Shown piece after piece: positions 18,861-43,481 of a stretch of DNA of 64,000 nucleotides (its first letter is position 1; each line of letters starts with the position of its first letter). The position numbers and the translations under genes are program-made. Under the pieces are notes generated by a model. It made no database searches. It had not been told where the DNA came from and worked only from the letters and a program-made list of their open reading frames with translations. The stretch spans positions 1,054,001 to 1,118,000 of the forward strand of contig OZ176057.1 in the NCBI GenBank assembly GCA_964247055.1. Direction: 5' to 3'. This DNA comes from Paragordius varius (taxonomy: Eukaryota; Animalia; Nematomorpha).

Positions 18861-19305
18861 CCAATCAAACCTAACAATTAATTCTCGTAAACCAAAAATT
18901 TGTTGCAGTGTGTGTGTTGCTACAGTCGAGGTTGTGGACCTTTTGCAATATTGTAAATAATATTTCTCAGTAAATTGCGGTTTTTAATTTTAATGTAGTT
19001 CACGCGGGTTTCTCGTTAAATATCGTACATTTACCTTATCCTTTTTCGGCTCTTTTACGTGTACCGCTAACTTTACCCAACATACCCACACTTTATATTT
19101 ATATAAGGGGGTATTAAATATTGAACACGGCCCTAACCATGCGCTAATCGAAATAACTTTTTTGCAAAAAGTTTCCTTGATTTTTAAATCGTTTGCTCGA
19201 ATATTGTATTTAAAAAGTGGATATTCATTGTTAAAAAATTTAGATTGAGATACGGAAGGTTTGGATCAAATATTTCACATTTTCAAGTTTTACCACTTTC
19301 ATACG

Positions 19306-22300
19306 ATGGATATTTATCCCTCACATGGTGCCTTAATTTCTCACTACAAGTTGGTTGGAGACAAATCAGATTTGGTATGTTACCATTATATTTTATAGTT
19401 GACAACTTTATCGAAATTGTTTACTGAGCAAAACTTGAAATATGATGGGACCACAAATATTAAATCATTGCTGGAAGGACTTGATAGTTTTTTATCTGCT
19501 CCTTTGACTTCAGAGAATATTGGTTATTTTGCAATATAATATTTTTATTTAGAATTCTGTCAATCCTTACTCGTAACGTTTGTACCATTGTTAAATAATG
19601 AAAACGATGATCAGGCAGTTATACAGTTTTGTGATATTTTAACACGAAACCTCGATCAAAAAATACAAGAAGTGCCGAAATACAAGATAATTTGCTTTAA
19701 AACGTTTTATATGATTTTTATTTTAGTCTCTTATGCCTATTTTTAACGTTGGATTTGAAACGACGCGTTAATTACGAAATTTATTTGAAAATCTTGAAAA
19801 TTATCAATTCAAATGCCGAACTAGCTTACATACAAACCGATTTTCCTAAAGTAATACAAAAATAAATATTTATTATATCTCTTTATTTTTTTCTAAAATT
19901 TTTTGTTTTTATGGTTTTAATAACTTTATAAAGTATAAATATCTATAAAAATAGATATGTATCAAAAATGAATGCAAGCTTTTACAAATATGTAGATTTT
20001 AATTAGATAATCGCTTTAAAATTCCAATTGCCTAATATAATAATTGATTATATACTTAAAACTCTTTTTTAATTAACATAATATTAAATATTAACTAATA
20101 TTACAGTTAACTATCTAACAGATCATTTACGGTAGCGTATGGTATAAAACATTATCAGTCCATAATAAAATAAATAACAAGCTTATTGTATAAACACATA
20201 CCCATAATATCCCTTCTTTTTTAAAATAATTTTTTTTTCTTTTATGGACTAATATTGTTTATTCCATACGCTACTGTAATATTACCTAAATATTTTGTAA
20301 ATAAAAACACATTTCTTACCACAATTATTCTAAACATAATTGTTTTAAATATAAATATATATATATATTATAAATTTTATATTTTTATTTGCATTTTTAA
20401 ATTAAAATATAGTTTTTATTAAATAAAATATTAAAAATATATGTATTACCTTTACGATATTGAGATTTTTACACTCTACATAAAAAAAGTTTCCTTTTAT
20501 CAAAGATATATTAACTTTTATTTTTATTTAATAATTTAATTTATATATTCTTATACCATTTTCCAATCAAAAGCAACATTTTTCAATTAAACAGAACTAA
20601 AAATGTTGCGTTTGCTTGAAAAAATGTTGCATTTGCTTGAAAACTGGTATATTACAATAGACATCAAAATATATCATTTTGTTTCATTTAAAAAATATAT
20701 ATTTTTGTTATATCGTCCATTTTTTTCGATTAAAATAATTTTATTTTATACCTTTTTAGTATAAATCGTGGTTTACTGGTTGGAAACTCAAATATGAGGA
20801 AAGAAAAACTTTTGTATATACTTTGATGGATACACTTGATAGACTTGGTCAAAAGTATCAATAACAACACGATATTTATATTAAAATTTTTTGGAAATTC
20901 ACACTTTACTCCATAAATTTTTTCTTGTTTTTTTTGGTTATATACCATTTACAATTCAAATTTGCCCTTGAACAATTCAAATTCACTTTCAAATAAAAAA
21001 TTACCTATATTTTTATATATTTTTTATGAAAAAATGTCGTTTTAAATTAAAATAATACTTTAAAAATAATGAACTCCACAAAGATATATTATATATTAAT
21101 ACTGAGTTTATTAGTTCGAAAACACATAATTTATTTTTGGGGTGAATTTGAATTATTCAAGGGTGAGTTTTAACTGTAAATGGATATTTATTTTACAATC
21201 ATAGAGTTGAATACTTATAAATAGATTAATATTTTTTTACCATATTGATTCACTTTTTACTATTTTTTTATGTGATTTCTCAATTTGTTTTCACTTCAAT
21301 ATTTTACTACTGTCTAAACAACGATAGTTTATATATATACAGTATATATATATATATAAGATAATTTATTAATTTGCATATTTTTTTGACATTTGAATCT
21401 TAACTGTTTTCCCAATTATAATCTTTATGTGCGTTTTTTTTATATTTTTGTGTTTGATATGTTAGAGTTAAGAGTTTTTGGAATTATAGTTGGTTATTTA
21501 TAAAGTAGCCCTTTTTACTTTATATTTGAATTTTTGCATATTTGTGGTTTAATTTTTCTTAATGTTTACTATATTTTTCCCTAATTATTTATCTTTTTGT
21601 TTCATTTTACCGAATTTTCGTATTTATTCTTAATTTTACAGTTAAAGTGTCCAGTCATGGGGTTTAATTTTTAGCATATTGTTTCATTCTTTGATTTTTT
21701 TATAACTTTTTATTACTTTTCATTTGCTTTTTATTTAATTTTATAGTCGTATTGCAATCTTTACATTTTAAATTATTTTTTTTTCTTTTTTTAATTATCT
21801 TAATTTTTTATATTTTGTAATTTTTTTAGAATATTTTTCATATTTTGTAATTTTTTTTATATAATTTTATATAGTCAACGAGCCTTACGTATTATGGTTG
21901 AATTTTTATCTTTTTTGTTTCATTGTTTGATTTTTGATTTTACAGTCAAAAAGACCAGACATACTGGGTTTTTTAGTCTTGAGCTTATTAATAAAATTTT
22001 TTGATTTTTTTTTGAAAATTTTTAATATCTTTGATTAATTTTTTGATTTTTTTTATGACTTATAGTTGTGTTGCATTCTTTATATTTATTATTAGATAAA
22101 TATATTTCCCTTTTTGAATTTCTTCTTTTTCAAATGATTTATCTTAATTTTATATATTTTTTAATTTTTTTTTATAATTTTTTTGTAACTTAATCATTTA
22201 TCATAATTTTTTCAAATAATTTTTTTTCTTTCAATTAATAATTTATCTTAATTTTTTATTTTGTAATTTTTTTAGAATAATTTTTTATAATTTATCTTTT

Positions 22301-23835
22301 TATGTAATTTTACACAGTCAACGAGCCTTACATATCATGGATGAATTTTACTCTTGCATTTGTTTTATTTTAACCAAATTTTAGCATTTTTTTTGATTTT
22401 ACAGTTAAAATAATAGTCCAACATTCTGGGGTTTTTTAACTTATTGTTTCAATTTATTTTTATAAAAATTTTCAATGACTTTTTATAAATTTATTATTTT
22501 ATTTTATAGTCTTGTCATTCTTTACATTTTTAATTTAATATTTTTCGCTTTTCAAATTTCTTTTTATCAAATAATATTTTTATTTTTTTTATATTTTGTA
22601 ATTTTTTTAAAATAATTTTTTTTTAATTTTTTATAATTTTTTTGTAACTTAATCATTTATCATAATTTTTCAAATAATTATTAATTCTTTCAATTTATTT
22701 ATCTTAATTTATATTTTTTTGTAAATAATTTATCTTAATTTTATATATTTTGTAATTTTTTAGAATAATTTTTTTTATAATTTTTTTTCAAAATTTTTTT
22801 CCTTCAAATAATTATTAATTCTTTTATTTATTTAATTTTTTATAATTTTTTTCCTATAAATGATTTATCTTAAGTTTTATAAATTTTTTTACACAGTCAA
22901 CGAGCCTTACATATTATGGTTGAATTTTTATCTTTTTTGTTTGATTTTACAGGATTTTAGCATTTTTTTTGATTTTACAATAGAGTGTCCAACTTACTGG
23001 GGTTTTTTAGTTTTAAAGCTTATTTTTTATTTTTTGATCTTTTTATGACTTTTTTTACTTTTTATTGAGTTCGATTATAATTTTGTCATTCTTTACATTT
23101 TTATTTTAATAATTCATCTTAATTTTTTATTTTTTTATAATTATCTTTTCTTTTAATAAATTATCTATTTTTTAATTTATTATTACATTTTTATCCCTTT
23201 TAATTTTTTTTCCTATATGATTTATTTTATTTTTTTTAAATATTTTTTTATGTGATTTTTACACAGTCAACGAGCCTTACATATCATGGTTGAATTCTTA
23301 CGTGCAAATTACAGTAAAGATAAGATTGATGTCTATTGCAAAGATTTGAAAAGATTACTTTCCTTGCATATCGCTTCGCCTACCATATATTTATTGGATC
23401 ATTTAACTCTGTTACCTGCTATTAATACCCTACATAATGAACCCATTTATAAGGTTTTTTGGGTTAAAATATATTTATATATATATATATATATGTATGT
23501 ATATTGCAATTATCCAATTTTTATTCACCTTTGAACAATTTAAATTTTTAACTCTTGAAAAAATTGAACAATTTAAGTTACCCTTGAACAATTCTTCAAA
23601 TTTAAATTCACCCTTAAACAATATAAATATACCCTTGAACAATTCAAATTCGCCCTTAACAATTCAAATTCACCCTCGAACAACCTAAATTCACCCTTTA
23701 AACGATTCAAATTTACCCTAAAAATATTTTATGTGTTTTCGAACTAATATAACTCATTATTTATATGAAATATATGCTTATGGTACAGTTTATTATATTT
23801 TTACAGTATTATTTTAATTTTGGACAAAATTTTAT

Positions 23836-26218: not shown

Positions 26219-29200
26219 AATATATATCATACCTTTATAATTGATATTCATATTTATAAAATATATATATATTAAATCAAGATACAGTAAAAATGCAATT
26301 TTACGGACAAAACTCAAAAATATATACATATATATTATTTCAAAAGACAACCCCATACTTTTTTGAACCTTAATTTTCCCTATTTAATCTATTTAATTAC
26401 AACTGTAAAATATATAATTGATTGCATACCTGTATACAATTCTATTTCATCTTTGCAACTAAAAACAATGGTTATATTGTAAAATAATAAAGATTTAAAA
26501 AGTATGTGGTTGTTTTTTGATAAAAAAATTTGTCTTTATATTTTTACGTTTTATCCATATAATTTCAATTTTTACTGTTTTTTTGTTTTTACCAATTTTT
26601 GATTTAAATGTGCAAAAAATAATTATTTGGAATCAAGTTTTTTTTGTTAAATTAATTTAAAAAAGGTATTTTACATTTGAAAACTTTTAAATAATTTTAT
26701 AACAAAAATATTAGTAAATATGTAAAACAAAACAATTTTATAAGTCCACTCTTATTTTAGTGTTTTAGGTCTAAAATATACCATTACATTTTAAATTTTC
26801 TCTATAATAAATTATTTGCTTTTAAGATTAAATAACCTATATGTTTTTATATTTTAATTTGTAATTATTAGAATACAGAAAAAATTATAAACTTAGCCAT
26901 AAAAAATATTTCACATCAATAATGAGTTATATTACCCCGAAAACACATAATATATTTTTAGGGTGAATTTGAATTCAAGAGTGATTTCAAATTGTTCCAC
27001 GGGCTAATATAACTAACTCATCATTTATATGAAATATATTTTTATGGAATAGTTTATTATTTTTTCAGTATATTGAAAACAAAATTTCATTTTTTTAAGT
27101 ATATAAAAAAATATAAGTAATTTTTAAAATCTTAAAAAACACATAATTTATATTTAGGGTGAATTTGAATTGTTCAAGGGTGAATTTGAATTGTAAATGG
27201 TATATAATTTTAACCAATTTTTTTACGTTTTAAAACAATCTATAGACTATTAAGTGCCTAATACCTTTTTTTTGATAGCCACAAAAAACTATATTTCATT
27301 TTTCCAAATTTTGCAATAATTGCATATTTTCCAAAATTAATTTTAATTAAAAATTTTTTTATTTTTTTTCTTGTGATTATTAGGCCTAAATCATGAAGAC
27401 AATTGTCGTAAAATCCGAATTCTAACATTTATTCAATTAGCCAGTGATGCCTACAATGCCAATTTAAACAAAAGCGGACAAAATATAACTGCGACGACGA
27501 CGAAAAATAGTTTATCAACTCACAATCAATCATCATTTACACCGTAAATATTTTATTTTAGTAAATTAAATTCACCCTTAAACAGTTCAAATTTACCATT
27601 TACAGTTTAAATATACCCTTGAACAATTGATAACCCTTGATCAATTCAAATTTACCCTTGAACAATACAAATTTACCCTTGAACAATTCAAATTTACCCT
27701 TGAGCAATATTAATTCATTCACCCTTAAACAATTTAGATTTACCATTTACAGTTTAAATATACCCTTGAACAATTTAAATATACCCTTGAACAGTTCAAA
27801 TTTATTCTCAAACAATTCGAATTCACCTTTGAACAATTTAAATTCACCCTTAAACAATTCAAATTGACCCTTGAACAATTCAAATTTACCCAACAGTTAA
27901 AATTCACCCTTGAACAATTTAAATTTACCCTTGAACAATTCAAATTCACCCTTGAACAATTCAAATTGGCCTTGAACAGTTCAAATTCACCCTTGAACAG
28001 TTCTAATTCACCCTTGAACAATTTAAATTTACCCTTGAACAATTCAAATTCACCCTTAATCTTTTTAAATTTACCCTTGAAATATCTTTTGAACAATTGA
28101 TATTATTCCTTGAACAATTCAAATTTACTCTTAATCTTTTCAAATTTACCCTTGAAAAATCCCTTGAACTATTCAAATTCACCCTTGAACAATTTAAATT
28201 TACCCTCGAACAATTGACCCTTGATCTATTCAAATTTATTCTTGAACGATTTAAATTTACCCTTGAACAATTCAAATTCACCCTAAAAATAAATTTTGTG
28301 TTTTCGGGCTAATATAACTCATTATTAATATGCAATATATATCTTATGGCATCATAGTTTATTATTTTTTCAGTATTATTTTAATTTAAAACAACAAAAT
28401 TTTATTTATTTATTAAAAATATATCTAAAAATATAGATTTTAATCTTAAAAAATATATAATTTATTTGAGGGTGAATTTGAATTGTTCAAGGGCGAATTT
28501 GAATTGTTTAAGGGTGAAATTGAATTGTTCAAGGGTGAATTTGAATTGTTCAAGGGCGAATTTGAATTGTTTAAGGGTGAAATTAAATTGTAAATGGTAT
28601 ATTTGAAATATATAGATATTATTGGATCTTTATTTTTATAATCAAAAAATATTTATTTTAGAGCTGGTCATTCGATACCGTTTCAAACTATAACGCATGA
28701 ATTAGATATCCCTTTGGATGAATGTGAAGAATATATTATAGATGGTAAAAACATTTTTTTAATTAAAAATTTCAGTAAATTCATAGAATTTAATTTTATT
28801 TAAAGTAACTATAAAGAAAAAGTATTTTTTTTATATGACAGTTTAAAAATTGTACATTTCGATATTTCTTTAATTTACAGTGACAAAATTATTCATTTTC
28901 TCAATGTAATCAGAAAGTTAGATAGTGGTATTTAAGTATAATGAATACATTCTTTTTAACCAATATTAATACACTTTTGCCAATATATATGTTTAATCAA
29001 AATATTTTCAATTTAAAATAGGGAATTTAATATTAACATAATATGGAAATCATTTATATTATGCTATCATTGCAATTAGAGGTCATAGTACTTCCTGATC
29101 AAGTAATAAATGGCTTATAAATGGTTTAAAAAGTACAAATAAAGAGCAAAAACCCATAATATTTATTTTTTTCCAATATATATATATATATTTATAACTT

Positions 29201-29696
29201 AGCAATCCGTACTAAACTTGTACGTTGTTTTAATATAATTATTTTTAGACAAATAACGTTATAATTATATACATGGATAACCAAAAAATAGATATAAAAA
29301 CTACAAAAAAAGAGAGCATTTAAAACTCAAAATATCCATATTTTTAGTATAATAATATAATTATATACATGGAAAACCAAAAAAATTATAAAAACACTCT
29401 TTTTTAACCCAAAATCATTAATATATTTATTTAACTTAGCAATCCGTACTAAACTTGTACGTTGTCGCATCGATGGAGCTATGCAATGTGTTGGTCCCCC
29501 TGAATTTGCTGCTGATAGAAGTTCCATCTTTTCGAATTCTACGAATTCTATGAATTCATCGAATAATCTTAATAATAATAATTCTGCCACTAATAATATA
29601 AATTCAAATTGGTCTACGCTTTCACAATCCCTAGACAACTGGATTAAAGTTTTTGGAAATGTTGGCAAAGCTTATCATGATTTAGTGGAAAATATG
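19306..29696 (+). CDS. EIF3M: Eukaryotic translation initiation factor 3 subunit M (PCI domain), core exons 1-10 (445 codons)
   Basis: Exons 19306-19374, 19399-19522, 19553-19703, 19727-19850, 20760-20854, 23267-23453, 25560-25644, 27384-27543, 28662-28744, 29440-29696, all phase-consistent. The translation aligns by eye to recalled eIF3m: KSWFTGWKL~RKWISDWNL, IMVEFL~VMVELL, LLDHLTLLP~LFDHLLTLKP, LLNIFIHG~LLTIFVSA, RKIRILTF~AKMRLLTF, IIDAIRTKLVRCRID~VIDAVRTKMVYCKID, WSTLSQSLDNW~WQQLYDTLNAW. Confidence 0.88.
21300..23270 (+). repeat. Degenerate T-rich tandem repeat (~370-580 bp units) in eIF3m intron 5, each unit carrying a copy of the exon-6 acceptor and exon start
   Basis: AGTCAACGAGCCTTAC(A/G)TAT(C/T)ATGG(T/A)TGAATT has its AG at 21873, 22316 and 22895, and at the real acceptor 23265. 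A second shared motif (TTTTACA...CCA...TGGGGTTT) also recurs in each unit. Confidence 0.85.
23843..23897. repeat. (TA)n microsatellite, representative of many
   Basis: Pure (TA)n tracts also occur near 386, 8484, 8719, 11713, 26166, 37753, 47397, 54198, 54282 and 61412, often abutting MITE ends. Confidence 0.95.
26285..26577. mobile_element. MITE family B (Tc1/mariner-like ends), representative of ~25 full or partial copies
   Basis: Long TIR CAGTAAAAATTGAAATTATACGGACAAAACGTAAAAATATAAAGACAA...AAAAGACAACCATAC with flanking TA. Other copies at approximately 5568-5830, 15714-15960, 24830-25040, 30780-31270, 39389-39663, 40390-40671, 40842-40890, 42525-42783, 45508-45752, 46700-46978, 47821-48110, 48478-48755, 49490-49755, 49885-50185, 52798-53410 (two), 54110-54850 (nested), 58526-58810, 60230-60490, 61980-62253. 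Confidence 0.88.
27564..28290. repeat. Expanded tandem array (~30+ units) of the 21-bp MITE-A subterminal repeat, in eIF3m intron 8
   Basis: Direct repeats of TTCAAATTCACCCTTGAACAA with point variants. They give the 7-aa periodic ORFs (FKFTLEQ)n, (SNSPLNN)n and (RVNLNCS)n in the ORF track. Confidence 0.9.
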
Positions 29697-30421
29697 GTAA
29701 AATAAATTACTTAGTAAAATTTAAGATTTTTTGGGTTGAATAATAGTTAACATACATTGTTGCCCTCTTGTGGTTTTTTTGCTATATTAAGTAATTTCAA
29801 TGATTAAATATATGCAGGGTTTCATTGTATATGTTATAGATTGAGCAGGTACAATAAAGGGCATTTTTATTGGTTTAGAGACAGTAATAAATGAAAAAAA
29901 TAACTTTGAACCAATGATATTTTCCTTTCTTGTTTATGCATCTGGCAATAGTAAATGAAAAACTCATACTGTATAACATAAATGATTGATTACAAAATTG
30001 TCAAATACCATTTACAATTCAAATCACCCTAAAAGTTAATTCTCTGTGTTTTCGGGCTAATTATTTATATTAAAAATATCTTTAGGCCATAGTTTACTAT
30101 TTCTTCAGTATTATTTTAATGTTAAACAAAATTTTATTTTTAAAAATATAGATAAATATAGGAAATTGTTAATCTTAAAAAAAAATTATTTTTTAGGGTG
30201 AATTTGAAACGTTTGGGGTATATTTAAGGTTATCTTACCATTTTTATTTCTTTATTTTGTGATAAATAAAACAATAGGTTATATTAACCAAAAAATAAGG
30301 TTGAATAAAAAGTATGAAAGCTATTTTTATAAAGTTAATTAAATATAATATTTGTTGTCTTTGAGTTTTTTTACATTATTTTGTCTTTTCTATAGTAATT
30401 TCATTAATAATAATATAAAAG

Positions 30422-33400
30422 GAACTGCAGCCATCATTTAACATTGGGATTGATGGCTCCACATCAACAGCAACTGGTGTTTTGTCAGCCTCTGTTGCCA
30501 TGACAACGGTTGCTATGGCAACCACACCAGCTGTTTTGGCATCTACCACCGGCATTACCGTGGCAACCGGGAGAGAAGAACAAACCCATATGACCGCATC
30601 TCGCATAGGTGGCGCCCCATCACCTGACCCCTACTATAAAATGATTGGTCCTCCACCACCACCCTCTCATCAATTACATGCACAAGGTATACACTTAAAT
30701 ACTCATATGATAAAAATGTGAATATTTTTTTCCAAAAAAATGGATTTTTGCAAAAGTCTGTTTTTGTTTATGATAAATAGTAAAAAATCAAATGATTTTC
30801 CTTATAGTAAAAATTGAAATGTGGGCAAAATGTAAAAATATAAAGTCAATATTTACTTTTTTGCAAAAGACTGTTTTTTGTCAATAATAAATAGTAAAAA
30901 ATTAAATGATTCTCTTTAAAGTAAAAATGAAATAACGACAAAACGTAAAAATATAAAGTTAATTATTAATCTTTTTTGTAAAATGTTTATAATAAATAGT
31001 AAAAAATCAAATGATTCTCTTTAGAAAAAAAATTGAAATAACGACAAAACGTAAAAATATAAAGACAATTATTATTCTTTTTTTGCAAAAGACCGTTATA
31101 CTTTGGTTAAGGGTGTGATGATTTCAAACATACGTCTTTGTTTTTTAATAGCAAATAATGGAATAGTGATGTAATAATATAATAGTTTATGGTTGGGTTT
31201 AGTTTTAAAATAGTATGAGGTTGTTATCTTTAATAAAAAAAAATATTTGTTTTCTTTTTTATGTTCTATCTAACTAAAATTTTTACTGTATGATTAATGG
31301 TATATTTGTCCAAAATGTATTTTAAATGGGTTTTTTTGTTGTTTATACAAATAATTTAATATAAATTATATTATGCTTTATATAATGACAATAACCTTTA
31401 TCGAAAAAAATGTAATACCACACAAAATTCGCGCATATTTATGGATATTTTGTATTTTTCCAAATATCAATCAATACCATTCCTTTCAATATACCATTTA
31501 CAGTTCAAATTCACCCTTGAAAAATTAAAATTTACCCTAAATTTTTGTTTTTTCAGGCTAATATAACTCATTATTTATATTTAATATATCTTTATGGCAT
31601 AATTCATTAGTTTTTGCATTATTATATAAATTTTACGACAAATTTCATTACATAAAAATATAAAATAATGTAGTTTTTAATCTTAAAAAACATATAATTT
31701 ATTTTTAGGGTGAATTTGAATTGTTCAAGGGTGAATATGGATTGTTCAAGGGTCATTTTAAACTATAAATGGTATTATATATCACTTAAATAAAAAGATA
31801 TTTTTACATGTCCATATTCATTACGTTTAAAAAAATTTAAAAATTCAAATAAGTAACTAAATTGCAACATAAATTGTTAAAAAATTATTATATTATTCTT
31901 TCCACAATTGTTTTATTTTCATTTCCTGGAAATTTATTTATAAATCTTATTTAATTATTTTAGGTCCTGCTGCCTATTATGGGGACGAGCCTACCCATCC
32001 ACCTCAATTAATGTATGGTTCTGACTATCCAAGTATATATTTTGTACAATATGTCATTAAACATTAATTTTTTATGATTTAAATTTAAAATTTATTTTAT
32101 AACCTTTTTTAAACTGTAAATGGGAAGTTTTATAATTTTAAAGGGTTTTTTTACAACTATAATATAGACTTTAGATTCTAAGTTACTTAATATGTATATT
32201 ATTTTTTAAGATACAGTGGTAAAAGTAATTGTAATTTATACCTACCAAAGGTAAAAATTAAAAAAAATATTTTTTGAATTTTTAAATATACTAACCATTT
32301 ACACACTTCAAATTCACCCTCTAACAATTCATAGTCACTCTAAAATAAATTATGTGTGTTTTTAATACTTAAAAATTATTTATATTTTTTGTAAAATTTT
32401 TATAAATTAAAATAATACAAATATAATGAAGTAAGCCATAAAGATATATTTCATATTAATAAAAATATATTATATCAACCCAAAAACACATAATTTATTT
32501 TTACGGTGAATTTGGATTGTAAATGGTATATATTTCATCGCTTTGGTTTTCGAAATGAGACTTAGACATAGATGTAAATTGGTAATACAATCAATTATAT
32601 TGATTGTAATTATAATTAAATAGTTTATATGAAAAAAATTAAGGTTTTATAAAGTATGGTTGTTTAGCAAAAATTCTCTTTTAATCAAATGAATCTTTAA
32701 TGAAGTATGGTTGTTTTCTTTTTTAAAAAAATAGTTGTCTTTTTGTTTTAACAAAGGAATCTTTAAGAAAGTATGGCTTTTTTGAAGTTTTCTTATATTT
32801 TTATGTTTTGTCTTATTAATATAAGCTTTTATTGTAAATTTCATGTACATTTTTAAAAATTTATATATTTATATGCCATTTACGATTCAAATTCACCCTC
32901 GGACAAATAAAATTCACCCTCAAATATAATATATGCTTTTAAGATTAAAAATTACCTAAATTTTATATATTTGTAAAAATTAAAAATTGTTTAAATTAAA
33001 ATAATACTGAAAAAATAATAAACTATACCAAAAACACATATTTCATATTAATAATGAGTTATATTAGTTCGAAAACACATAATTTATTTTTTGGGTGAAT
33101 TTGAATTGTTCAAGGGTATTTAAATTGTTCAAGGGTAAATTTGAATTGTTCGAAGGTGAATTTGATGTGTTCAAAGAGTGAATTTGAATTGTTCAAGGGT
33201 GAATTTGAATTGTTCAAGGGTGAATTTAAACTGTAAATGGTATATAAAAAAATTTGAATCTAATTATAAATTGTTTATAGAACCACAGTTACCAGTACCC
33301 CAACCCTTTGTTGATTATTATTCATCGAAATCAGCTGATTTTCAGGCGGGCGCAATGGCGAATATCCGACCCTATGAATATCCGCCGCCTCTGGGAATAC

Positions 33401-34557
33401 CAACAGCTGATCGAAAACCAGATGATTATTATTATGGTAGTAGTGGTAATGCACCAGCATACTATCAATCATCGGATAATAGGAGACCACCACCACCATA
33501 TGATTTGCGTTCTGTACCTCCTGCACCGTATGAGGAGACAATTGGGGCACCACACCACCCCCCACCCTCCCAATTCAGATCTTTGGGGGCTGTTGGTGGG
33601 GTACCCTACAACCCCATTTACGGCAGAGAGTAAAATATACTCCTTTTTTTATTTTAACACTACCTTAATAATTGACAATACGAAAACAATTGTGGCTGTT
33701 TTTTTACAAAAAAAAGGCGTAAAACCCTTGTTAGAAGCGTATAAAATCGGAATAGTTCCTTGGCTATTTAGGGTTCTTATTTTGTAAGGAGCAGTTATAA
33801 AATTTATGTTGTTAATGCTATACGTTTTTTATGACAGCTACATTTTTTACGTCATTTTGAGCATATTTTTCAAACAAAAAGTAAAGTTTATATTATAATT
33901 GTTAATGTGTAATTAACCGCTTATGTGTAAATAATAAGTTATGAGATTATAGATACTTTTTGACAGTTGACATTTATACCTTATAGATAGTTATGTCCTA
34001 CCTAAAAATGCCTAATTTTTTGTTTTGTTTTTGCTATTAGATACGAGGAAGATGTAGATTACACCATGTTAGTACGTCCAACAATGGGAGGGCCTGGGGA
34101 ACGGGGTGCAATTCCACCCCATTATGCATTGCCCTTGGGCGGGGCCCATCATCCTTTACATAATATTCCACCACCACCACCACCCCAGTCATATGATGGA
34201 TTTAGGCGAGGGTCGGCCTTGGGGGCGCATTTATACAGTGGTGGTGGGAACACATTAGCAGCTGGTGTTGACACTTATGAGCACCGTACTAATCATAATA
34301 ATAATAACTATGCTAAAGATTATAATAGCAATCAGACATATGCCGCCGTTCCTTACAACAATTACGGCGGTGGAGAAGGTATCGGCAGCGGTGGTTACCA
34401 TGGCAACGTTGCAGCACCATATGATCGCAGCGGGCCTGGAATGTCATATCCTAGTGTAGGACATTCAAGGCTTCCACTACCCTTACCTCCACCGCTGTAT
34501 GGGGCACCCACACAACCCCAAATGACGTCGTCCCGTAGAAAATATTTGTTGGAATGA
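30422..34557 (+). CDS. Four further coding exons (399 aa, Pro/Tyr/Gly/His-rich low complexity), most simply a C-terminal extension of eIF3m
   Basis: Exons 30422(or 30431)-30686, 31964-32032, 33281-33629, 34041-34557 (TGA). Phases 1,1,2 chain perfectly, the sequence is GC-rich and coding-like, and it matches ORFs 30482, 33178 and 34066. The exon-10 donor ATG|gtaaaa (29697, phase 0) is in frame with AG acceptors at 30421 and 30430. Confidence 0.72.
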
Positions 34558-36340
34558 AAGAATGATGAATCGATCGCACATTAAAAATAATTTTTGATTT
34601 TATTTGAATTTTTTGTCTTGTTTTTATATATATATATGTATTGAGTAACGTTTTTTAAATATTTCTCTCACTTTATTGTTGGCCAATTGACAATACAGTA
34701 TAGCTTGTGGTTAAAAACAACATATATATGAAATTAAACAATGTTTCCCAGAATTTGTTAGCTTATATAAATGGACGAAATTTGTTTTTTATCATACACC
34801 ACTGATTCCAACAATAACGTGAATCGGCCAACAATGAAGTGAGTAGGATATTAACTAATTTTTCTTTATTTTTTTATATATTGGAACGAAATTTTATAAT
34901 TTAGTTTAATTAGGTTTTTGGGGATTATTTGGAGATATTTTTGCATATAATTTTATTTGTTTTACGTTATATAATTAGTTTTGTCAAGAAGTATATGTTT
35001 TTGTTAATAATTGCTTTTTTTCAATAAATGTCATTTGAGTTTATTACACCGTATGACCAAACGGTGATGTGATATTATGTTTATATCTAATATCAATCAA
35101 TAGCTGAGACCTTAGTTAAACTATTATCGTATAATTTGATTTAATCTGCTATAAATTGGAAAAAAACCTATGTAATAATATAAATTATCCTAAAAAATAA
35201 TATTAATTTACAAAAAGTTTTCATTGGTTTATTTTTTGGATTTAGCCAAATTTTAAAAAGTTTAAAATACCAAAAATTTTAATTAACATTTACTATAATT
35301 ATAACATTAAGATATGAGATTGTGTTATAAGGAAATTCAAATAAAACTTTAAAATATAAATTTTTACAACCTTAAAGCACCTGAATAACAATTCCCATAT
35401 TATGTGTCTGTCAAACACAAGAATAAAGGTAATGAAATCTCAATACTTTGGGGGAAAAAATGCTGTTTTGCGTCGTAAAAAAACACAATTTATAGTGAGC
35501 TGTTTAGGGTTTGGTTATTCAAATTTATTTAACTTAAAGAGCTTGTTTACTAAAAATAAACGCAAATATCACTTAATAGCGTGGAATATTTTTATTATAC
35601 ATGCTAGATAATTCAATACAAAATTTTTATGGTATTAAATATGTGTTATCTATGATTTTATTAAAATTGAATAAACTATAAAATATTTTTTTTTAGTCTT
35701 TGTCATGTTTTAACATACATCAAAACGCTATCACTGCATTAGTGTTTATTATTTAAAAAAACTGGCACATTTTAAAGTGGTCCGAAATTTGACACATCTA
35801 AAAGTTAAAACTAAATATAAATATTGCCTTTTATACCTAGATCATATATTTTATTATAAAGGAATGAAGCATGCCTTATTAAAAATTTAACATAAAATGC
35901 ATTAATATTGCTTTTTTTATATGGATCAATCAGCAAAAAAATATAAATATTTTTAAGGTTAAAACCAAAGTTAACACCATAATCCTGATTTATATAGAGA
36001 ATTTTTAACCCCCAATATTTCATCAAAATATTTTACCTGCCCACTGAGTCGTAGGGTTGTTTATGGCTATTCAAAAGTGCATTTATTAATTAAATTTAAA
36101 TCACAGCAATTTTATTTTAATGAGTGTGAATTTGATATGAAAATTTGGAATATGTCTAATAAATAATAAATCGATATAAATTTCGTTAAACAATATATTC
36201 TTACAAAATTATTTTTATGTACAGTAAAAATTTAATTTATAAATGCAAACAGTAAAACTAAAAGACAAATTTTTTAAAACTATTATATCGTTTCGGGTAA
36301 TAATATGGGCATGGAGATGTAAATTGGCAAACATCTAGAG

Positions 36341-36767: not shown

Positions 36768-37747
36768 TCATTTTTCAACATTATTATGACTAAACATTGT
36801 ATTCGCTGGTGTTATACCTTGTTTTTCTGAACGAATCGATATAATTTTGGGAACTAACAGAAAGTATAGTTGAATTAGCAATATAACACTGTAACACACG
36901 GTTAAAGTTACTAGGGCAGGAAAGCCCGAGATTATGAAATAAAAAATTATGCCAACAACATAAACAAGGACACTGACATTCGTTACAATTTGTAGGAGTC
37001 GAACTCTGTTTGACGACAGGACCGTATACAAATTACTAAGAGTTAAGCTTTGTAAAACCATGATAATCATAACGCAAATTTGTAGGAAGAGAGTTGGTAA
37101 AAGATAGCTAAGTGTAACTGGGTAAGGACTACAAATTTCTTGAATGACAGGTAAGCCTAAATTTCGTCTCTTACTCCGTGCATACAAATATTGTAATCTC
37201 ACGTCCTGTTCCTCTTTACGTAGCACAGTGGGTAAATGTTTACCCACATAAATCACGTAAATTATGAACTGTGAATATAAAAAAGATTGAAATAAATTTT
37301 AGTTAAAATATCTATGTTATAAAAGAGCGAGTCTTGACAGGGATTGTGACCGCTTTTATAAATAGGTTCAAAAGTAAACATATTTTATTACACGTTATTA
37401 TAAAAATAAAAAATGGCATATTTGCCAAAACGTAGCACAAAAATTGGTAAAAAAAATAAATAAAGATAAAAAATTACTAATTTGGTTTTCATACATGCAT
37501 ATGCATATATGACTGTGGAAAATTTGATAAATCAACGGTTAGACCTATATTTTTCACTAAAATTCGCAATGAATTTGATAAAAAATGAGTGAGTCTTTAA
37601 CTGGAGCATTTAGAAATTAGTTTTAGATTAATTATTTTAAAGTAACGCATATATATATATATATAAACTAACTTTTGCATTCACAAAAACTTTAAACCAT
37701 TGATTAATAATAGTCGGCCCTTTACAAATAAACTGTTATTTTATAAA

Positions 37748-37793
<46 letters not shown>

Positions 37794-40700
37794 GCCACAT
37801 TAAATAAATAAATAAATTTCTAACTTGTATGAGAAATGTTATGATAAAATAACGTTTGACTCCGCGATTAATATCCATCTCAATTGCTTTCGTCACCTGC
37901 TGTTTGTACTTTTTTATTGCAATGTATTGTCGACACACTAAGCTAATGTATATGAAAACGAATGACACCAGAAAACAAAAAAGACTCCATCCACATAATC
38001 CATAACTCAAACGTGGTATCATCAGCAAATAAATTGATACACAACCCAAGAATATACCCAGGGCATGGAAATACAGTATGGATCGATATTCCAGTTGAAA
38101 CGTCAAATTTTTATAATGCCTCAGGTAAAAAGCTATGGCAAAAGCAAGGAGAATCAGTGTGACAGTAGCCAGAAAGTATAAGAAGGCCCAAACGCGTAAA
38201 TTTCGTACATGACTTACTAATAATCGTGCACACTTGGTTTGATTAATGTTAGGTGCTGTGAGGTAGGGACACTTTTTACAAATCTCAAAATTATTCTGGG
38301 CAAGTTTATTAATGGGCGTAAATATTTCGTTTTTGGCACAACCAAGGCAAACCCAACAACATTTACTGGTTGTGGTGTAAGCACGAGTGTTATTAACACA
38401 TGGTTGGGAACAACTCGAGATTGGGGCAGTTTTCCAATCTGAAAATGTATGTCTGTTCCACATTATTGGCTGTTGAATGATAAGTTTAGTTGGGTTTGTA
38501 GTCTGTATGAACCTGCCAACTGCGATAGAGCCTAGAGTACCGTTTAAAAATCGGCGAAAATTAGAGAAACGAATAGGTTCATTCACAGAACGTTCATGAT
38601 TGAAATGGATGTGGCCGGTGAGTGCAAAAAATGATATGTTAGCTATAATGTCTCGAAAATATATCGGTACATTTTGCATGATACATTGGGTTAGGTCTAA
38701 TCTACTATACAGTGTGGTCTTATTATTATTGCTACAATGAGTGGATATAAGTTTGGCGAATCCATACATCATAGTCGTAGTTGCATCCATAGTCAATGTA
38801 ATTCGGGGATTAAGAGCTCCCCTCGATCGTCTTTGAAGATCTGCAATATGAGTTTCCAAATATTTGAACCAAGGATGACTGAGTCCTCCAGTGTTATTTC
38901 GTTTTGAAGTCATCAACCATTCCGAATATTCTTTGGGCACGTTACCGAATTCTGAAAGGATTATACTTCCGTCAACAATGTTGGTCAAATTATGGGATTC
39001 CAGTTCATAGGGCTGAGGCCATGTATCTGGTCCTATGAACAAAAAATATGGATCTTGTTTGATCTTTTGAATCGCTCTCAGCATCGGAACGAACTGATAA
39101 GAATTAAGTAAGGTAAAAACTATTCTTGCAGTAGGTTTGGTACCCATAAGTGCCAAAGTTTGCTGATCAAAAGATATGGGGGAATCACTGTTGACTTTAA
39201 GCGTTTGCCAAAGGCATATATCATTATCCTCCAGAAGTTCCACAAATTGACCATAAAAACGTATGTAATAAGGATCATCCGAGTATATAATTGATACTTG
39301 GTTCCAATGAAAATATCGAACGAATTCGACCATACCCATTAAATAACTATCGTGGGGCGATGTTATTCGATACAAATAATTGAAGCTACAATAAAAATTG
39401 AAATTATACGGATAAAACGTAAAAATACAAAGACAATTTTTTTTCTAAACAAGCTTACGTTTTTAAACCTTAATTTATCCTATAAAAATTATTTAAATGC
39501 AATCGTAATATACATTAATTGTGTTACCCATTTAATCTTTTTTATACTTTCAGTTTAATACAATCAGCATAATTAAAAAATAAACATTAAAAATGTATGG
39601 TTGGTTGTCTTTCAGAAAATAATATTTGTATATTACGTCCCCGTAAAATTTCAATTTTTACTGTAAATTATACTAAATATCTGATTTCTCATATATTTTG
39701 TGTTAGTTAACATATATATATAAATACCAAATTCGTTAGTGAGCAAGTTGGTAGCTCCTTTTAACATTTTTTGGTACATTTTAAAATATTTTACAGTATG
39801 CATTTTAATGGTTGCATATTTCACATTATAATAGGGAAATTTCCAACACAGGAGAGTGTATGGAAAAAAAGGAAATAATTGTTTATTTAACATTTTGTTG
39901 ATACTGTGTGCAAATTGCCCTACAGTGTGATATAAGCGACCATTAAAATGCTTACTGTATTAGAAAATCTTTCATATGTTTCATACTTTATGAAACAAGT
40001 TTTAAATAAATTTTAAATTTTGGGCAGTTTATTAGTCCAATTTGTATCAAAGGATAAGTCTTCATGATTTGTGGTTGCTAATTTATTTTAGCCATCAAAT
40101 TATCTTAAAATATTGTGTTTGCTTAACATAAAATAAAATTTATTTTATTATGAAGTAGCACGATATTTTTAATTCCTAAAACTTTCATTAATATTTACGA
40201 CATCTAATACCAATTTCTATTTACCGTGGAAAAAATGTCAATGATTTTAAAGTTAAAAAAATACAGCAAAATTATACTTAGTCATATCAAGTATATTTTT
40301 CATCTCTTTCACTAATTTAAAAAGCTTTACGAATATTTTATATATATTTGACAATTTTTTGATTTTCCACGATATAATTAGTACAACTTGAAATTATACC
40401 AAAACGTTAAAATATAAAGACAAATATTTTTAACTTAAGGACAACCATACTTTTTTAAACCTTAATTTTTCTCATATATATATAATCATAATTTTAAAAT
40501 ATAATATTCATTGCGTCACCAATATAGATATCAATTCTTCAATATTCAATTTGAAACAATTGAATTTTATATAAAGATATGAAGCTTAAAAAAGTATGGT
40601 GGTTGTCTTTTGAAAAAGAATTGTCTTTTATTTTAACGTTTTGTCTGTATAATTTCAATTTTTACTTACTGTAGTCTATGAAAAAGATCCGAATTGGCCT

Positions 40701-43481
40701 CTGGTGAAATTTGTGTCATATTGTAAAATGATAGGAAAGGGCTAACGTTTGTAGCGACATTACTGGTTAGAGGTCCTACGAGACCCACTATTCTAAAAGC
40801 TTCACGTAAATTCATCATTACTATACATTGAATCTAAATTACAGTAAAAACTAAATACGGAAAAAATGTAAAAATATAAAGACAAATAAATTCTTAATAT
40901 TATAACTATAATATCTATCGTTGTAAGTATCATAATAAAGTGTGCAGGTATAAATTATTATTTCTCTAAGTTATACAGTCATGTATCCATTATTTTAAAA
41001 ATTTATTTTCTTTCGTTAAATGGGTATAAATATTTGTTAAAGAATGGAAAAAACAAGATTCATCAAAAAATAAGAATTACCATAGAGCTCTTGTTTCTCC
41101 ATTCTTTACCGAATATTTATACCCATTTAACAAAAAAAATAATTTTTGATAAAATTAAGGATACATAACTGTATATTTCTCAATTGTAATCTTTTAATTA
41201 ATAAATAAAAATCAATGTTTAAAACGACAAAAATAAATTGTCCTTAAGCTTTTATATGTTAGTTATATAATTTGAATACTGTAGATGGGGGGCTAAATAT
41301 GTTGCGCCTTCATTTATTTTTATGATTATTAATTGAGGAAAAAATATTTTAAAATACAGAGAATTAATTATATATGGATGCACACAAAACATATCCCGAT
41401 AAAATAATTATATTTTGGGATTTTCATGGTGAGTACGGTGCATCCAAGAAAAATAAAAGAAAATATTTTAAAAACTTACAATTGTTTTATATCGTATATA
41501 AATATTTTTATTTTCTCTAGAAATCCAAAATTTTTAGCCCTTTCTAAGCCAGTGTTTTCGAAAAAATTCCCAAATTTTGCCAAACAATTTTTGAATGTTA
41601 GATACAATTTTAAGCTTAAAGTGTATCTGATGGTTGATGTATGATAGAAAAGGTATAACTAACGCCTTTTTTTTAATTTGAAAGATTTACAATTTTTGAC
41701 TAAATGTATTATAATGTTGCAAAATATATATATACATGTATACATATAAATATATATATATATATAACTTAAAATTAAAGTCTATAAATTTTTTAATTAA
41801 AAAGGGTAAAAAATATTTAACTCTATCGAATTAAATATAAAAAGAGATCTTTTACCGTTTCCAGTATCCTTCTAAATACCATTAAATATTATATTATAGT
41901 ATAATTTATCTAACGTTTAATGTTTTAAACAAAGTATGCTTTTTTTCAAAAAAATTTCTTTATTACATATTGCTGAGATATAAGGTTATTGCAAAATCTC
42001 GCTATTTTTTGCCTTTATTTCAACAAAAATACATTTTAGATGGGCTAAATTAAGAATTTCGTAGCCCAGCTTTGTCTTTAAACGTAGTTTAGGAATATAT
42101 TATGATATATTTACGATGATGTTTTTTAAAATAAAGGAACTATCCCGAAAAGTTTTAGCATCATATGTGCTATTTTTGCGATTTTATGGTATATATAAAT
42201 CACAAAAGTGCAAATATTTTTGTTGTATGACACGCAAAGCCCAAAACCAAAAACGCTATTAGAACCTAATATATTCTATAAAATAAATTATATTTTATCA
42301 GGATATATTTTTTACCATGAATCGCATATTTACCATCTTTTATATATGATTTCAGCACCTCATTCCTTTTTAGGCTATTGTACCCTACGTGTTATATACA
42401 AATAACTTAAGAGATATGTATATAACCTTTTAGGCGCATTAGATAATTTTTTAAAAATTTTCATAAAATCTTCATTATGATTTTTACCCTCCAGATTTGT
42501 ATATACTAAAAAACTGACATTTATACAGTAAAACTGAAATTAAAGGACAAAACTTAAAATTATAGATAAACATTTTTATCCAAAGGATAACCATACTTTT
42601 TTAACCTTAATTTTTCCTATATACGTTTATTTAGAGTTATAATTTGTACAATTGATTGGGTTTCACACTTTGCCTGCCATTTTAACAATGTGTTATGAAA
42701 ATCATTTTAAAGGTAGGTTTTCTTTTTGAGAAAATATTCTATATATTTGTACATTTTGTCCGTATAATATCAGTTTTCACTGTAAATTTAATGCATTAAA
42801 TTTTTTTAATATTTTTGAAAACCAGTTGTTGGTTTTGAGTGTTGGATTATATGTGGACTATAATACTCATAAAATTATAAAAATTTTAAGCCTTTATATC
42901 TTATTATAACAATGATTTTAATCATTATTAGACAATATAATGTCTGTTAATAAATTAGCATTACAAATTCAGGGTTCTGCCATAAAAATACCCCATAATG
43001 TATTTTTCACATAAATATTGTAAAATTAGAAAGTATTAATGATTAAAAAAATGTTTAATTATTAGTGTTGACCTATAGTTAGTTATTAAAGTATAAATAT
43101 AAGTTATACTAAAGCTGTTGCAGGGTTAGAGCAGGTAGGGAGTATAAGATACCCCACTTTTAAATTGTACTTTGGGTTAAAATATTGTCGATTCCATTCC
43201 TCTATAATGTAAACCATGGAAAAAGCTTTGACCACAGAAAATTCTTTCAAACTGTCCCCACACATTGAGTAATGATCCAAATTACTGGAATATAGATCGA
43301 ACAGACCCCCAACGTTAATATCACCATCTTTAACGAGTTGAGTAGATGGAAAATTTTTGAGAGATTGCTTTTGCATTTCGTAAGAAGGATTTATTTGAGT
43401 TGTTGTTAATGCGCAAATTATAGTTAACGCCACTGATCTCAAATTTAGAAGGGTAGTAGAGGATAATTTCATAGTGTACAT
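36768..43481 (-). CDS. Class C GPCR, metabotropic glutamate/CaSR/taste receptor-like (~865 aa): signal peptide, Venus flytrap, nine-Cys domain, 7TM
   Basis: Exons 43481-43110, 40833-40670, 39385-37825, 37268-36768 (TGA); phases 0,2,0; 2598 nt. Family motifs: GDINVGGLF, VGYLILPTCS, IVGLVGP, TQISP, FHWNQVSIIYSD, FIGPDTW, ISFFALTGHIHFN, CSQPC..CCWVCLGC..CKKC..KC (9 Cys), and TM7 LLVPKI. Confidence 0.92.
39794..39957. mobile_element. MITE family H (TIR CAGTATGCATTTTAATGG)
   Basis: TIR pair flanked by TA. Related copies at approximately 14963-15160 and 60650-60846. Confidence 0.78.

Follow-up and report, generated by a model that had tools for sequence, protein, structure and literature searches.

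In the hairworm Paragordius varius, a gene resembling that of the translation initiation factor subunit eIF3m is followed on the same strand by four GC-rich exons that can be joined to it in frame. The locus raises the question of whether these exons (hereafter tail exons) provide eIF3m with an alternative C-terminal tail, switched by splicing, or form a gene of their own. We addressed this question in a window of 64,000 nucleotides, i.e., the whole stretch of DNA analysed (contig OZ176057.1, positions 1,054,001 to 1,118,000). As judged from the sequence, a separate open reading frame (ORF) translated from ATG 30500 appears slightly better than the splice toggle. We assign a probability of roughly 0.55 to a separate gene, with eIF3m as a normal-length neighbour. 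The features discussed below are collected in Table 1.

Table 1. Positions of the relevant features within the window
Feature	Position	Strand	Remarks
eIF3m last exon, AIRTKLVRC...DLVENM-VK-stop	29440..29705	+	acceptor tttaacttAG, ending at 29439
Candidate internal 5′ splice site, ATG/GTAAAA, phase 0	29697..29702	+	hexamer shared with inferred donors at 28745 and 33630
Poly(A)-site-like module: AATAAA (29701-06) and T6GGGTTG (29727-38)	29701..29738	+	
High-copy MITE within the 690-nt gap between eIF3m stop and first acceptor	30005..30227	.	terminal inverted repeats
Consensus-type 3′ splice site, tatAG, 15/20 pyrimidines	30376..30395	+	TAA is the next codon
Exact TATAAAAG	30414..30421	+	first in-frame AG formed by its final two bases
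Tail exon 1	30422..30686	+	contains acceptor 30430/30431, uATG 30453 and in-frame ATG 30500
Tail exon 2	31964..32032	+	23 codons, entered and left in phase 1, acceptor ttattttAG, donor GTATAT
Tail exon 3, PPPY motif	33281..33629	+	
Tail exon 4, PPHY and PPLY motifs	34041..34557	+	TGA end at 34555-57

The upstream gene and its 3′ end

The upstream gene was assigned through a 28-aa exon (27380-27463), whose PDB matches comprised three sequences only, all of them eIF3m, with E values of about 0.2. In human eIF3m (374 aa), the match covered residues 266-287. The remaining exons of the gene, searched singly, gave no matches and were too short to score. Together with the C-terminus of the human protein, as we take it to be, the PDB matches point weakly but specifically to eIF3m.

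The terminal codon of the eIF3m similarity, ATG, occupies 29694-96, and GTAAAA begins at 29697, as found both by direct reading and by script. If the transcript remains unspliced, the protein ends two codons past ...ENM with V-K-TAA (stop at 29703-05). The last exon continues in phase from the exon before it, whose end is at 28744. By exon arithmetic, the residues left after the match to 266-287 of 374 roughly fit a protein of normal length, and the C-terminus of the worm eIF3m appears to lie roughly near the human end point when an Asn-rich insertion is discounted. The predicted protein stops a short way past the PCI/winged-helix region, as eIF3m proteins of about 370-420 aa do. Its likeness to canonical eIF3m (human EIF3M, 374 aa; PDB 3j8b_M and 6zvj_M) lies in the weak PCI-region match and the apparent end point; the difference is the Asn-rich insertion of roughly 30 residues in the last exon. 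A class C GPCR exon neighbours the locus.

AATAAA overlaps the TAA stop codon of eIF3m, and a U/GU-rich element, T6GGGTTG, follows 21 nt downstream. Since AATAAA or ATTAAA occurs about 6 times per kb in the window, the hexamer alone says little. A similar layout is repeated, however, at the 3′ end of the tail exons, where ATTAAA at 34580 is followed by a T-rich run, which argues for two separate genes. The eIF3m protein would then end with ...ENM-VK-stop, and the AATAAA on the stop codon would direct cleavage and polyadenylation of the transcript about 20 nt further downstream.

The same short segment allows a second reading, which we consider possible but doubtful. The last eIF3m exon might be a composite terminal exon that switches between splicing and polyadenylation. 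Cleavage at the AATAAA on the stop codon would yield normal eIF3m, and binding of U1 snRNP to 29697, 4 nt before AATAAA, would permit read-through and splicing to 30422 or 30431. The resulting fusion of eIF3m with a disordered, tyrosine-rich tail of 396-399 residues is predicted to comprise about 844 aa in total. In favour of this reading, a phase-0 donor is located exactly at the end of the eIF3m similarity, and its hexamer recurs at two inferred donors, one in eIF3m and one at tail intron 3. The overlap of the donor with the poly(A) hexamer is the layout expected for competing splicing and polyadenylation. As far as the sequence goes, the terminal exon does contain a candidate 5′ splice site ahead of a poly(A) signal. 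However, the donors in both genes are degenerate, with 10 different hexamers among 11 inferred donors, so that a phase-0 GT near the end of a gene is not rare. A second donor-like site in phase 0, TTA/GTGGAA, occurs four codons before 29697. A copy of the exon end with its donor (exon-end echo) was sought in the gap and not found. A literature search revealed no eIF3m with a C-terminal extension of this kind. We know of no eIF3m that carries a 400-residue disordered C-terminal tail.

The tail exons are coding sequence

All four tail exons are bounded by GT-AG introns with consistent phases (0>1>1>2), and together they comprise 1197 nt, corresponding to 399 codons, plus the TGA. Their GC content is about 0.5, compared with about 0.2 in the flanks and 22% in the genome. 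These GC-rich islands are open from end to end, a property that shuffled sequences matched in 301 of 5000 cases for exon 1, 59 of 5000 for exon 3 and 3 of 5000 for exon 4. DNA contigs also revealed a second haplotype of exon 1 with 12 differences in about 210 nt. Seven of the 12 are synonymous in the tail frame, as against 2 of 12 in either other frame, and the only indel between the haplotypes is an in-frame CCG insertion. We conclude from the GC content, the openness beyond that of shuffles and the allelic synonymous excess that the four tail exons are real coding sequence.

The contigs covering the locus also span the introns, which identifies the underlying runs (X1-X4) as DNA. Three further runs with the same species label, guessed to be RNA, gave no contig anywhere on the 5.8 kb of the locus that were compared and are uninformative on expression.

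A decaying remnant, or open frames that arose by chance and yield no protein, would be in line with the low complexity of the sequence, the lack of detected relatives and the high polymorphism of exon 1. This explanation is very improbable, because it would have to account for four islands of about 50% GC that are open throughout and share consistent phases and TAG acceptors in a genome of 22% GC. It would also leave the synonymous excess, confined to the tail frame, and the in-frame codon indel to chance.

The sequence-only reading had described the eIF3m end at ...DLVENM (29696) with its GT donor and TAA, the pyrimidine-rich acceptor at 30395 that lands on TAA, and in-frame AGs at 30421 and 30430 leading into four more exons and ~399 aa. 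All of these elements are present in the sequence, with 399 codons and exons numbering four in all. Its view that normal eIF3m ends soon after the PCI domain is consistent with a stop two codons past ENM.

The tail protein is predicted to be disordered

Among the 399 tail residues are 62 Pro, 45 Gly, 36 Ala, 35 Tyr, 31 Ser and 15 His, and neither Cys nor Trp occurs. Single-sequence AlphaFold2 models gave a mean pLDDT of 56.6 without secondary structure for exon 3, and a mean pLDDT of 50.7 with a pTM of 0.14, likewise without secondary structure, for exon 4. Thus, the tail protein is predicted to be intrinsically disordered. The three PPxY motifs (PPPY, PPHY and PPLY) fall within the region predicted to be disordered and accessible. 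No part of the tail reached the usual hydropathy threshold for a signal peptide or a membrane segment; the highest value over 19 residues was 1.44, in a stretch spanning the ATG.

Pfam searches with each tail exon gave no match at E values up to 1. For exon 4 alone, a word search was empty, the Atlas provided no usable match, and an exhaustive search of 1.84 billion representatives returned 0 matches. By these searches, the tail is a protein without detectable relatives and matches no described family. A search for syntenic loci in relatives, with the last eIF3m exon as query, yielded no candidates.

Acceptors and promoter-like elements in the gap

The acceptor ...ttttgtcttttctatAG ends at 30395 and is immediately followed by TAA, and none of the three frames stays open for long beyond it. 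Sites of this strength occur at 0.34 per kb on the + strand. The AGs at 30420-21 and 30429-30 both open an exon in phase 0, and the tail frame is closed just upstream by TAA 30416-18. That both AGs open the tail frame straight after the closing TAA supports the fusion of eIF3m with the tail.

The quality of these acceptors argues in the opposite direction. The nine acceptors that could be placed in the eIF3m gene and the tail are without exception T-rich and end in TAG (composition-based p about 1.6e-5), and the three tail acceptors are preceded by 50-110 nt without AG. The acceptor at 30395 conforms to this pattern, whereas those at 30421 and 30430 deviate from it: the former is AAG, and the latter is CAG, contains 6/20 pyrimidines and has a further AG 9 nt ahead of it. 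The acceptors required for a fusion are therefore atypical, and they are situated 26 and 35 nt downstream of a consensus TAG whose use ends the frame at once. A separate gene is in better agreement with an acceptor pattern that fits 30395 and not 30421 or 30430.

The exact TATAAAAG, a consensus TATA box, lies 86 nt before ATG 30500 and coincides exactly with the rise in GC content; six copies occur on the + strand of the 64-kb window. Its position ahead of the tail ORF likewise favours a separate gene and speaks against the fusion. GC content is also mildly elevated at 29750-30050. The terminal inverted repeats of the MITE in the gap are common to copies in the tail introns (D5, D16, I18, I24), and contig depth in the MITE bin was about 116,000, compared with about 150 in the adjacent bin. 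Neither the gap nor the window as a whole contains a match to Rfam.

A rescue of an upstream start codon by a micro-intron was considered and rejected. ATG 30314 is in the tail frame, but its frame runs into TGA 30362, and none of its codons begins with GT. Micro-introns from GT 30383 or 30395 to 30421 or 30430 leave no ATG in the open frame. That no micro-intron rescues the upstream ATG 30314 counts for the fusion. So does the lack of micro-introns at the 5′ end of the tail gene, in which it differs from eIF3m.

The 78 nt upstream of ATG 30500

Evidence against a start at ATG 30500 comes from the 78 nt between AG 30421 and this codon, which behave as coding sequence in the tail frame. With exons 2-4 alone as training set, a codon model assigned +4.5 bits to the 26 codons that precede the ATG (dinucleotide-shuffle p of 0.002). 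This score is higher than that of the 26 codons directly after the ATG, and 0 of 567 other GC-rich windows attained it. GC content by codon position was 0.50/0.58/0.35 before the ATG and 0.56/0.61/0.37 in the rest of exon 1. Three of the four allelic differences in the segment are synonymous third-position changes with 3-nt spacing, and a Ser/Thr/Ala/Val-rich low-complexity block continues across ATG 30500. The segment looks translated and has no preceding in-frame ATG, as expected for a fusion. This argument is weakened by 30422-30475, the part free of DNA-level repeats of downstream sequence, where frame 0 reaches 2.0 bits and frame 1 reaches 1.9 bits, practically the same score.

The coding-like signal would also fit a separate gene whose coding start lies upstream of ATG 30500 and is joined at AG 30421 or 30430. 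Its AUG would be supplied by a small first exon within 29706-30394 or by a spliced leader ending in AUG. Phase-0 ATG...GT mini-exons are available at 29800-29826 (donor GTATAT), 29914-29931, 29936-29950 (donor GTAAAT) and 29982-29999, in a region where GC content is slightly raised. We nevertheless regard this variant as improbable. Like the fusion, it depends on the atypical acceptors, and mini-exons as good as the candidates, none of which is supported, are to be expected by chance in AT-rich DNA. As to a spliced leader, no SL RNA family match was obtained within the window, and our literature search returned no report of spliced leaders in nematomorphs or hairworms.

A proposed separate gene read from ATG 30500

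We return to the preferred reading, a separate gene translated from ATG 30500. The first in-frame ATG is at 30500, and its good Kozak context, already pointed out in the sequence-only reading, is gccATGa, with G at -3 and A at +4. This context supports the separate gene, as do the apparent end of the worm eIF3m near the 374-aa human end point and the difference in codon composition, since GC3 amounts to 0.35 for the tail and 0.24 for the last exon of eIF3m.

According to this reading, the four GC-rich exons would constitute a lineage-specific gene with a product of about 373 residues, rich in Pro, Gly, Ala, Tyr and Ser. Given its three PPxY motifs, it would most plausibly serve as a flexible scaffold or adaptor for the docking of WW-domain proteins, e.g., Nedd4-type ligases. 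Two options exist for the 5′ end of the mRNA. Transcription may be directed by the TATAAAAG at 30414 and start near 30440, or the transcript may be spliced onto the acceptor at 30395, either through a 5′-UTR intron or by a spliced leader. Under both options ATG 30500 would be the start codon, since every frame closes after 30395 and the interval from TAA 30416-18 to 30500 lacks an in-frame ATG. The analysis establishes the exons with their frames, the coding signal, the predicted disorder and the lack of relatives; where the transcripts begin and end, which codon starts translation and what the protein does are inferred. Apart from the coding-like 78 nt, two points count against the separate gene. 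Any 5′ UTR beginning upstream of 30453 contains the out-of-frame uATG 30453, which opens 16 codons and whose TGA overlaps the main ATG. Furthermore, the TATA box and the acceptor at 30395 are incompatible within one transcript.

Significance and comparison with known systems

If the genes are separate, the locus consists of an ordinary lineage-specific gene for a disordered protein beside a housekeeping gene, and it cautions that gene finders might fuse the models of these neighbours in this AT-rich genome. If the fusion is true, eIF3m would be, as far as known, the first core subunit of eIF3 whose low-complexity tail can be switched, and the locus would illustrate, as a clean natural case from a phylum that has received little study, regulation by competition between splicing and polyadenylation. 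A long form of eIF3m with the PPxY tail might equip eIF3 with a condensate-forming or ligase-docking arm, a conjecture we hold only tentatively. The locus lends itself to a sharp test at the RNA level, since it offers a single donor, a single poly(A) site and three acceptors that all fall within 35 nt.

Composite terminal exons are known from the secreted and membrane forms of immunoglobulin mu and from calcitonin/CGRP. The locus resembles them in having a 5′ splice site just before a poly(A) signal and in-frame exons downstream; it differs in that the donor is only a candidate and the frame-keeping acceptors are weak. With conjoined (read-through) genes and merged gene models it shares two same-strand sets of ORFs, 690 nt apart, that can be joined in frame. 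Such chimeras, however, are usually minor transcripts. A downstream gene on the same strand, behind a strong acceptor to which no coding exon is attached, is reminiscent of spliced-leader operons of the nematode type, although the 690-nt gap exceeds that of typical operons.

Disordered adaptors that present PPxY motifs to the WW domains of Nedd4-family ligases include the tails of ARRDC proteins, the N-termini of Ndfip proteins and the proline-rich region of ALIX. The hairworm tail is devoid of homology to these proteins and of a folded or membrane domain, so that the likeness is one of motifs and composition: like them, it is rich in Pro and Tyr, predicted to be disordered and equipped with three PPxY motifs.

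Coding character of the tail exons

The sequence-only reading had described an eIF3m homologue that, at a donor at 29697, either stays unspliced and stops, splices to 30395 and meets a stop at once, or splices to 30421 or 30430 and gains a C-terminal tail of four exons. Direct reading of the sequence (AG positions, TAA after 30395, four in-frame exons) bore out its coordinates and all three outcomes. The tail totals 399 codons plus TGA.

The tail exons are real coding sequence. Their GC content is ~50%, compared to ~20% in the surroundings, and the reading frame is uninterrupted across each whole island, which same-base shuffles matched in 301, 59, and 3 of 5000 cases for exons 1, 3, and 4, respectively. 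The DNA contigs of one sample contained another haplotype of exon 1, of comparable depth (346 vs. 308), with 12 substitutions in ~210 nt (~6%; 30457-30667) and an in-frame CCG inserted after 30655. Seven of the 12 substitutions are synonymous in the tail frame versus 2 of 12 in either other frame (expected, ~0.3). No haplotype differences were reported in the DNA contigs for exons 3 and 4, and none was listed for the ~110 nt at ~30325-30436 that carry the acceptors and a TATA-box sequence, where differences within ~30 nt of contig ends go unreported. We regard non-functional tail exons as very improbable.

Coordinates of exons and repeated elements
Feature	Position	Strand	Basis
Last eIF3m exon	29440 to TAA 29703-05	+	direct reading of sequence
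Tail exon 1	30422-30686	+	GT-AG, phase-consistent
Tail exon 2	31964-32032	+	GT-AG, phase-consistent
Tail exon 3	33281-33629	+	GT-AG, phase-consistent
Tail exon 4	34041-34557	+	GT-AG, phase-consistent
Copies of SQRALHIMVEFL string	about 21890-22000, 22330-22380, 22883-22957, 23256-23300		
MITE copies	30005-30227, 31485-31775, 32290-32530, 32865-33255, many others		shared terminal inverted repeats

The upstream gene

The 28-residue exon at 27380-27463 had three matches among solved structures, all eIF3m chains (E about 0.2), and aligned with residues 266-287 of the 374-residue human eIF3m; the remaining exons, searched singly against solved structures, were too short to score and gave no match. 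Without an Asn-rich insertion of ~30 residues, exons 28662-28744 and 29440-29702 together approximate the length of human eIF3m past that point. Thus, the gene, whose last conserved codons are ...DLVENM (ATG 29694-96), followed by GTA-AAA-TAA, appears to end where eIF3m normally does. Its C-terminal motif presumably resembles the human sequence, which we treat as a lead only. The three micro-introns previously placed at 19375-19726 (24, 30, and 23 nt) each run from GT to TAG and each keep the frame.

Three further observations concern this gene. A T-rich, acceptor-like sequence (attttcaAG, 19283-19308) lies 16 nt 5' of its start codon, placed as at nematode trans-splice sites, and is likewise a lead only. 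The acceptor region of the last exon and its first 26 bases (...taacttag/caatccgtactaaacttgtacgttgt; 29400-29465) recur as a near-exact copy within the preceding intron (29167-29228), ~235 nt 5' of the real site; the frame shuts shortly after this copy, which could be a decoy or an alternative 3' splice site. Finally, a peptide-like string (...SQRALHIMVEFL...) leading into the exon at ~23286 has three or more further copies in the long upstream intron, in what looks like an array of intron/exon boundary copies.

Acceptor choice downstream of eIF3m

Four sequencing runs covering the locus also cover its introns and are therefore of DNA type, and three small runs, presumed to be RNA, yielded no contigs over 29000-34800. 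Fusion and separate gene were judged on sequence features. All nine acceptors placed in eIF3m and the tail (G of the AG at 19398, 19552, 19726, 27383, 28661, 29439, 31963, 33280, and 34040) are TAG after a T-run, whereas T occupies -3 at only 29% of the window's AGs (p about 1.6e-5); the tail's three acceptors follow an AG-free stretch of 50-110 nt. The AG at 30394-95 matches this pattern (tatAG, T-rich tract, 15/20 pyrimidines) and is directly followed by TAA. The AGs at 30420-21 (AAG, 10/20 pyrimidines) and 30429-30 (CAG, 6/20, with the other AG 9 nt 5') both enter the tail frame in phase 0, which is shut just 5' by TAA 30416-18. Because these two differ from the T-rich TAG rule, cis-splicing here should mostly choose 30395. 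All three frames are shut after 30395, and the tail reading frame would then be enterable solely at ATG 30500.

The join from 29696 to 30396 had been taken as a source of canonical-length eIF3m. The TAA right after the acceptor is present as described. However, nonsense-mediated decay acts against mRNAs with a stop upstream of further exon junctions, and this stop precedes three of them, so the join is ill-suited to making normal eIF3m. The natural canonical product would be the unspliced, polyadenylated transcript. An AATAAA (29701-06) overlaps the eIF3m stop and T6GGGTTG follows 21 nt further 3'; cleavage sites are usually laid out this way, with a poly(A) hexamer followed by a U/GU-rich stretch.

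Translation start of the tail

The 3' end of the tail gene is similar to that of eIF3m, with ATTAAA at 34580 past the stop and then T-rich sequence. At 30414-21, 86 nt 5' of ATG 30500 and precisely at the GC rise, stands an exact TATAAAAG; this 8-mer, with six copies only, on the + strand, in 64 kb, is a candidate promoter (TATA box) for the tail gene. The context of ATG 30500 is good, with G at -3 and A at +4, and GC3 is 0.35 in the tail versus 0.24 in the last eIF3m exon. Acceptor rule, eIF3m poly(A) module, TATA box, start context, and codon composition would together favor a separate gene that uses ATG 30500 as its start codon, to which we assign a probability of about 0.55.

A fusion of eIF3m and tail, arising from competition between splicing and polyadenylation, seems unlikely to us, yet the 26 codons preceding ATG 30500 (30422-30499) favor a start upstream of that ATG, which a fusion needs. 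With a codon model trained on exons 2-4 only, the tail frame yields +4.5 bits for them, and the two alternative frames yield -2.4 and -39. The tail-frame score is matched by 0.2% of dinucleotide-preserving shuffles and by none of the 567 other 78-nt windows with GC >= 0.42, and it exceeds that of the first 26 codons past the ATG (-2.5 bits). GC at the three codon positions is 0.50/0.58/0.35 upstream of the ATG and 0.56/0.61/0.37 downstream, and of the four allelic differences upstream of it, three are synonymous third-position changes, spaced exactly 3 nt. However, the last eight of these codons are a DNA-level, in-frame repeat of post-ATG sequence, and outside the repeat (30422-30475) frames 0 and 1 are nearly equal (2.0 vs. 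1.9 bits). The GTAAAA donor at 29697 shares its hexamer with the donors inferred at 28745 and 33630, a modest factor toward fusion, but the coincidence is not rare, since donors are degenerate (10 different hexamers among 11 inferred donors) and another phase-0 GT lies four codons 5'. Acceptor rule, poly(A) module, and TATA box roughly offset the coding-like signal before ATG 30500.

A separate gene might also start in an unrecognised upstream coding exon or receive its AUG from a leader, which we consider distinctly improbable. Four phase-0 mini-exons of the form ATG...GT can be read (29800-29826, 29914-29931, 29936-29950, and 29982-29999), none with any support. Perhaps operons with a spliced leader, maybe ending in AUG, are involved; however, we found no paper on spliced leaders and nematomorphs together in the library searched, and the window contained no match to an SL RNA family. 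ATG 30314 was rejected as a start: it is in frame, but a stop follows at 30362 and no micro-intron could rescue it.

An out-of-frame uORF of 16 codons (30453-30503) ends in a TGA that overlaps ATG 30500 (ATGA), a layout shared with termination-reinitiation pairs. Three allelic differences near it are non-synonymous in its frame, and its peptide is thus probably not conserved.

Genomic surroundings

The window is strongly AT-rich (16-34% GC in 2-kb bins); GC in a published hairworm genome is 26.9% (bioRxiv 10.1101/2023.06.26.546503). The introns of the window's genes are packed with a MITE whose termini are ATACCATTTAC...TTCAAATTCACCC; inside it sits an expandable tandem unit of 21 nt (GGGTGAATTTGAATTGTTCAA). 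The contig depth of this MITE, 10^5 to 4.6x10^6 versus a few hundred for single-copy DNA, places it among the genome's most abundant repeats. Convergent with the tail gene, on the minus strand, lies a class C (metabotropic-glutamate-type) GPCR gene (36768-43496), whose open exon at 37741-39375 (544 codons) encodes a Cys-rich motif (CCWVCLGC) and hydrophobic, TM-like stretches. None of 4237 word-sharing candidates matched this exon at E 1e-20 or better, so the receptor is quite divergent.

The tail product

The tail contains 15.5% Pro, 11% Gly, 9% Ala, 9% Tyr, and 8% Ser, along with 15 His; Cys and Trp are absent. Pfam gave no match for any tail exon, and exon 4 had no relative by word search, in Atlas, or in an exhaustive search of 1.84 billion representatives. 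Single-sequence AlphaFold2 models, with mean pLDDT values of 56.6 (exon 3) and 50.7 (exon 4) and virtually no secondary structure, are consistent with a disordered tail. As a separate gene, the tail would encode a protein some 373 residues long and disordered, in which tyrosine occurs 35 times and the PPxY motif three times (PPPY, PPHY, and PPLY). In composition and motifs only, and not by homology, such a product resembles tails that recruit Nedd4-type WW-domain ligases and tails that drive assembly mediated by aromatic residues.
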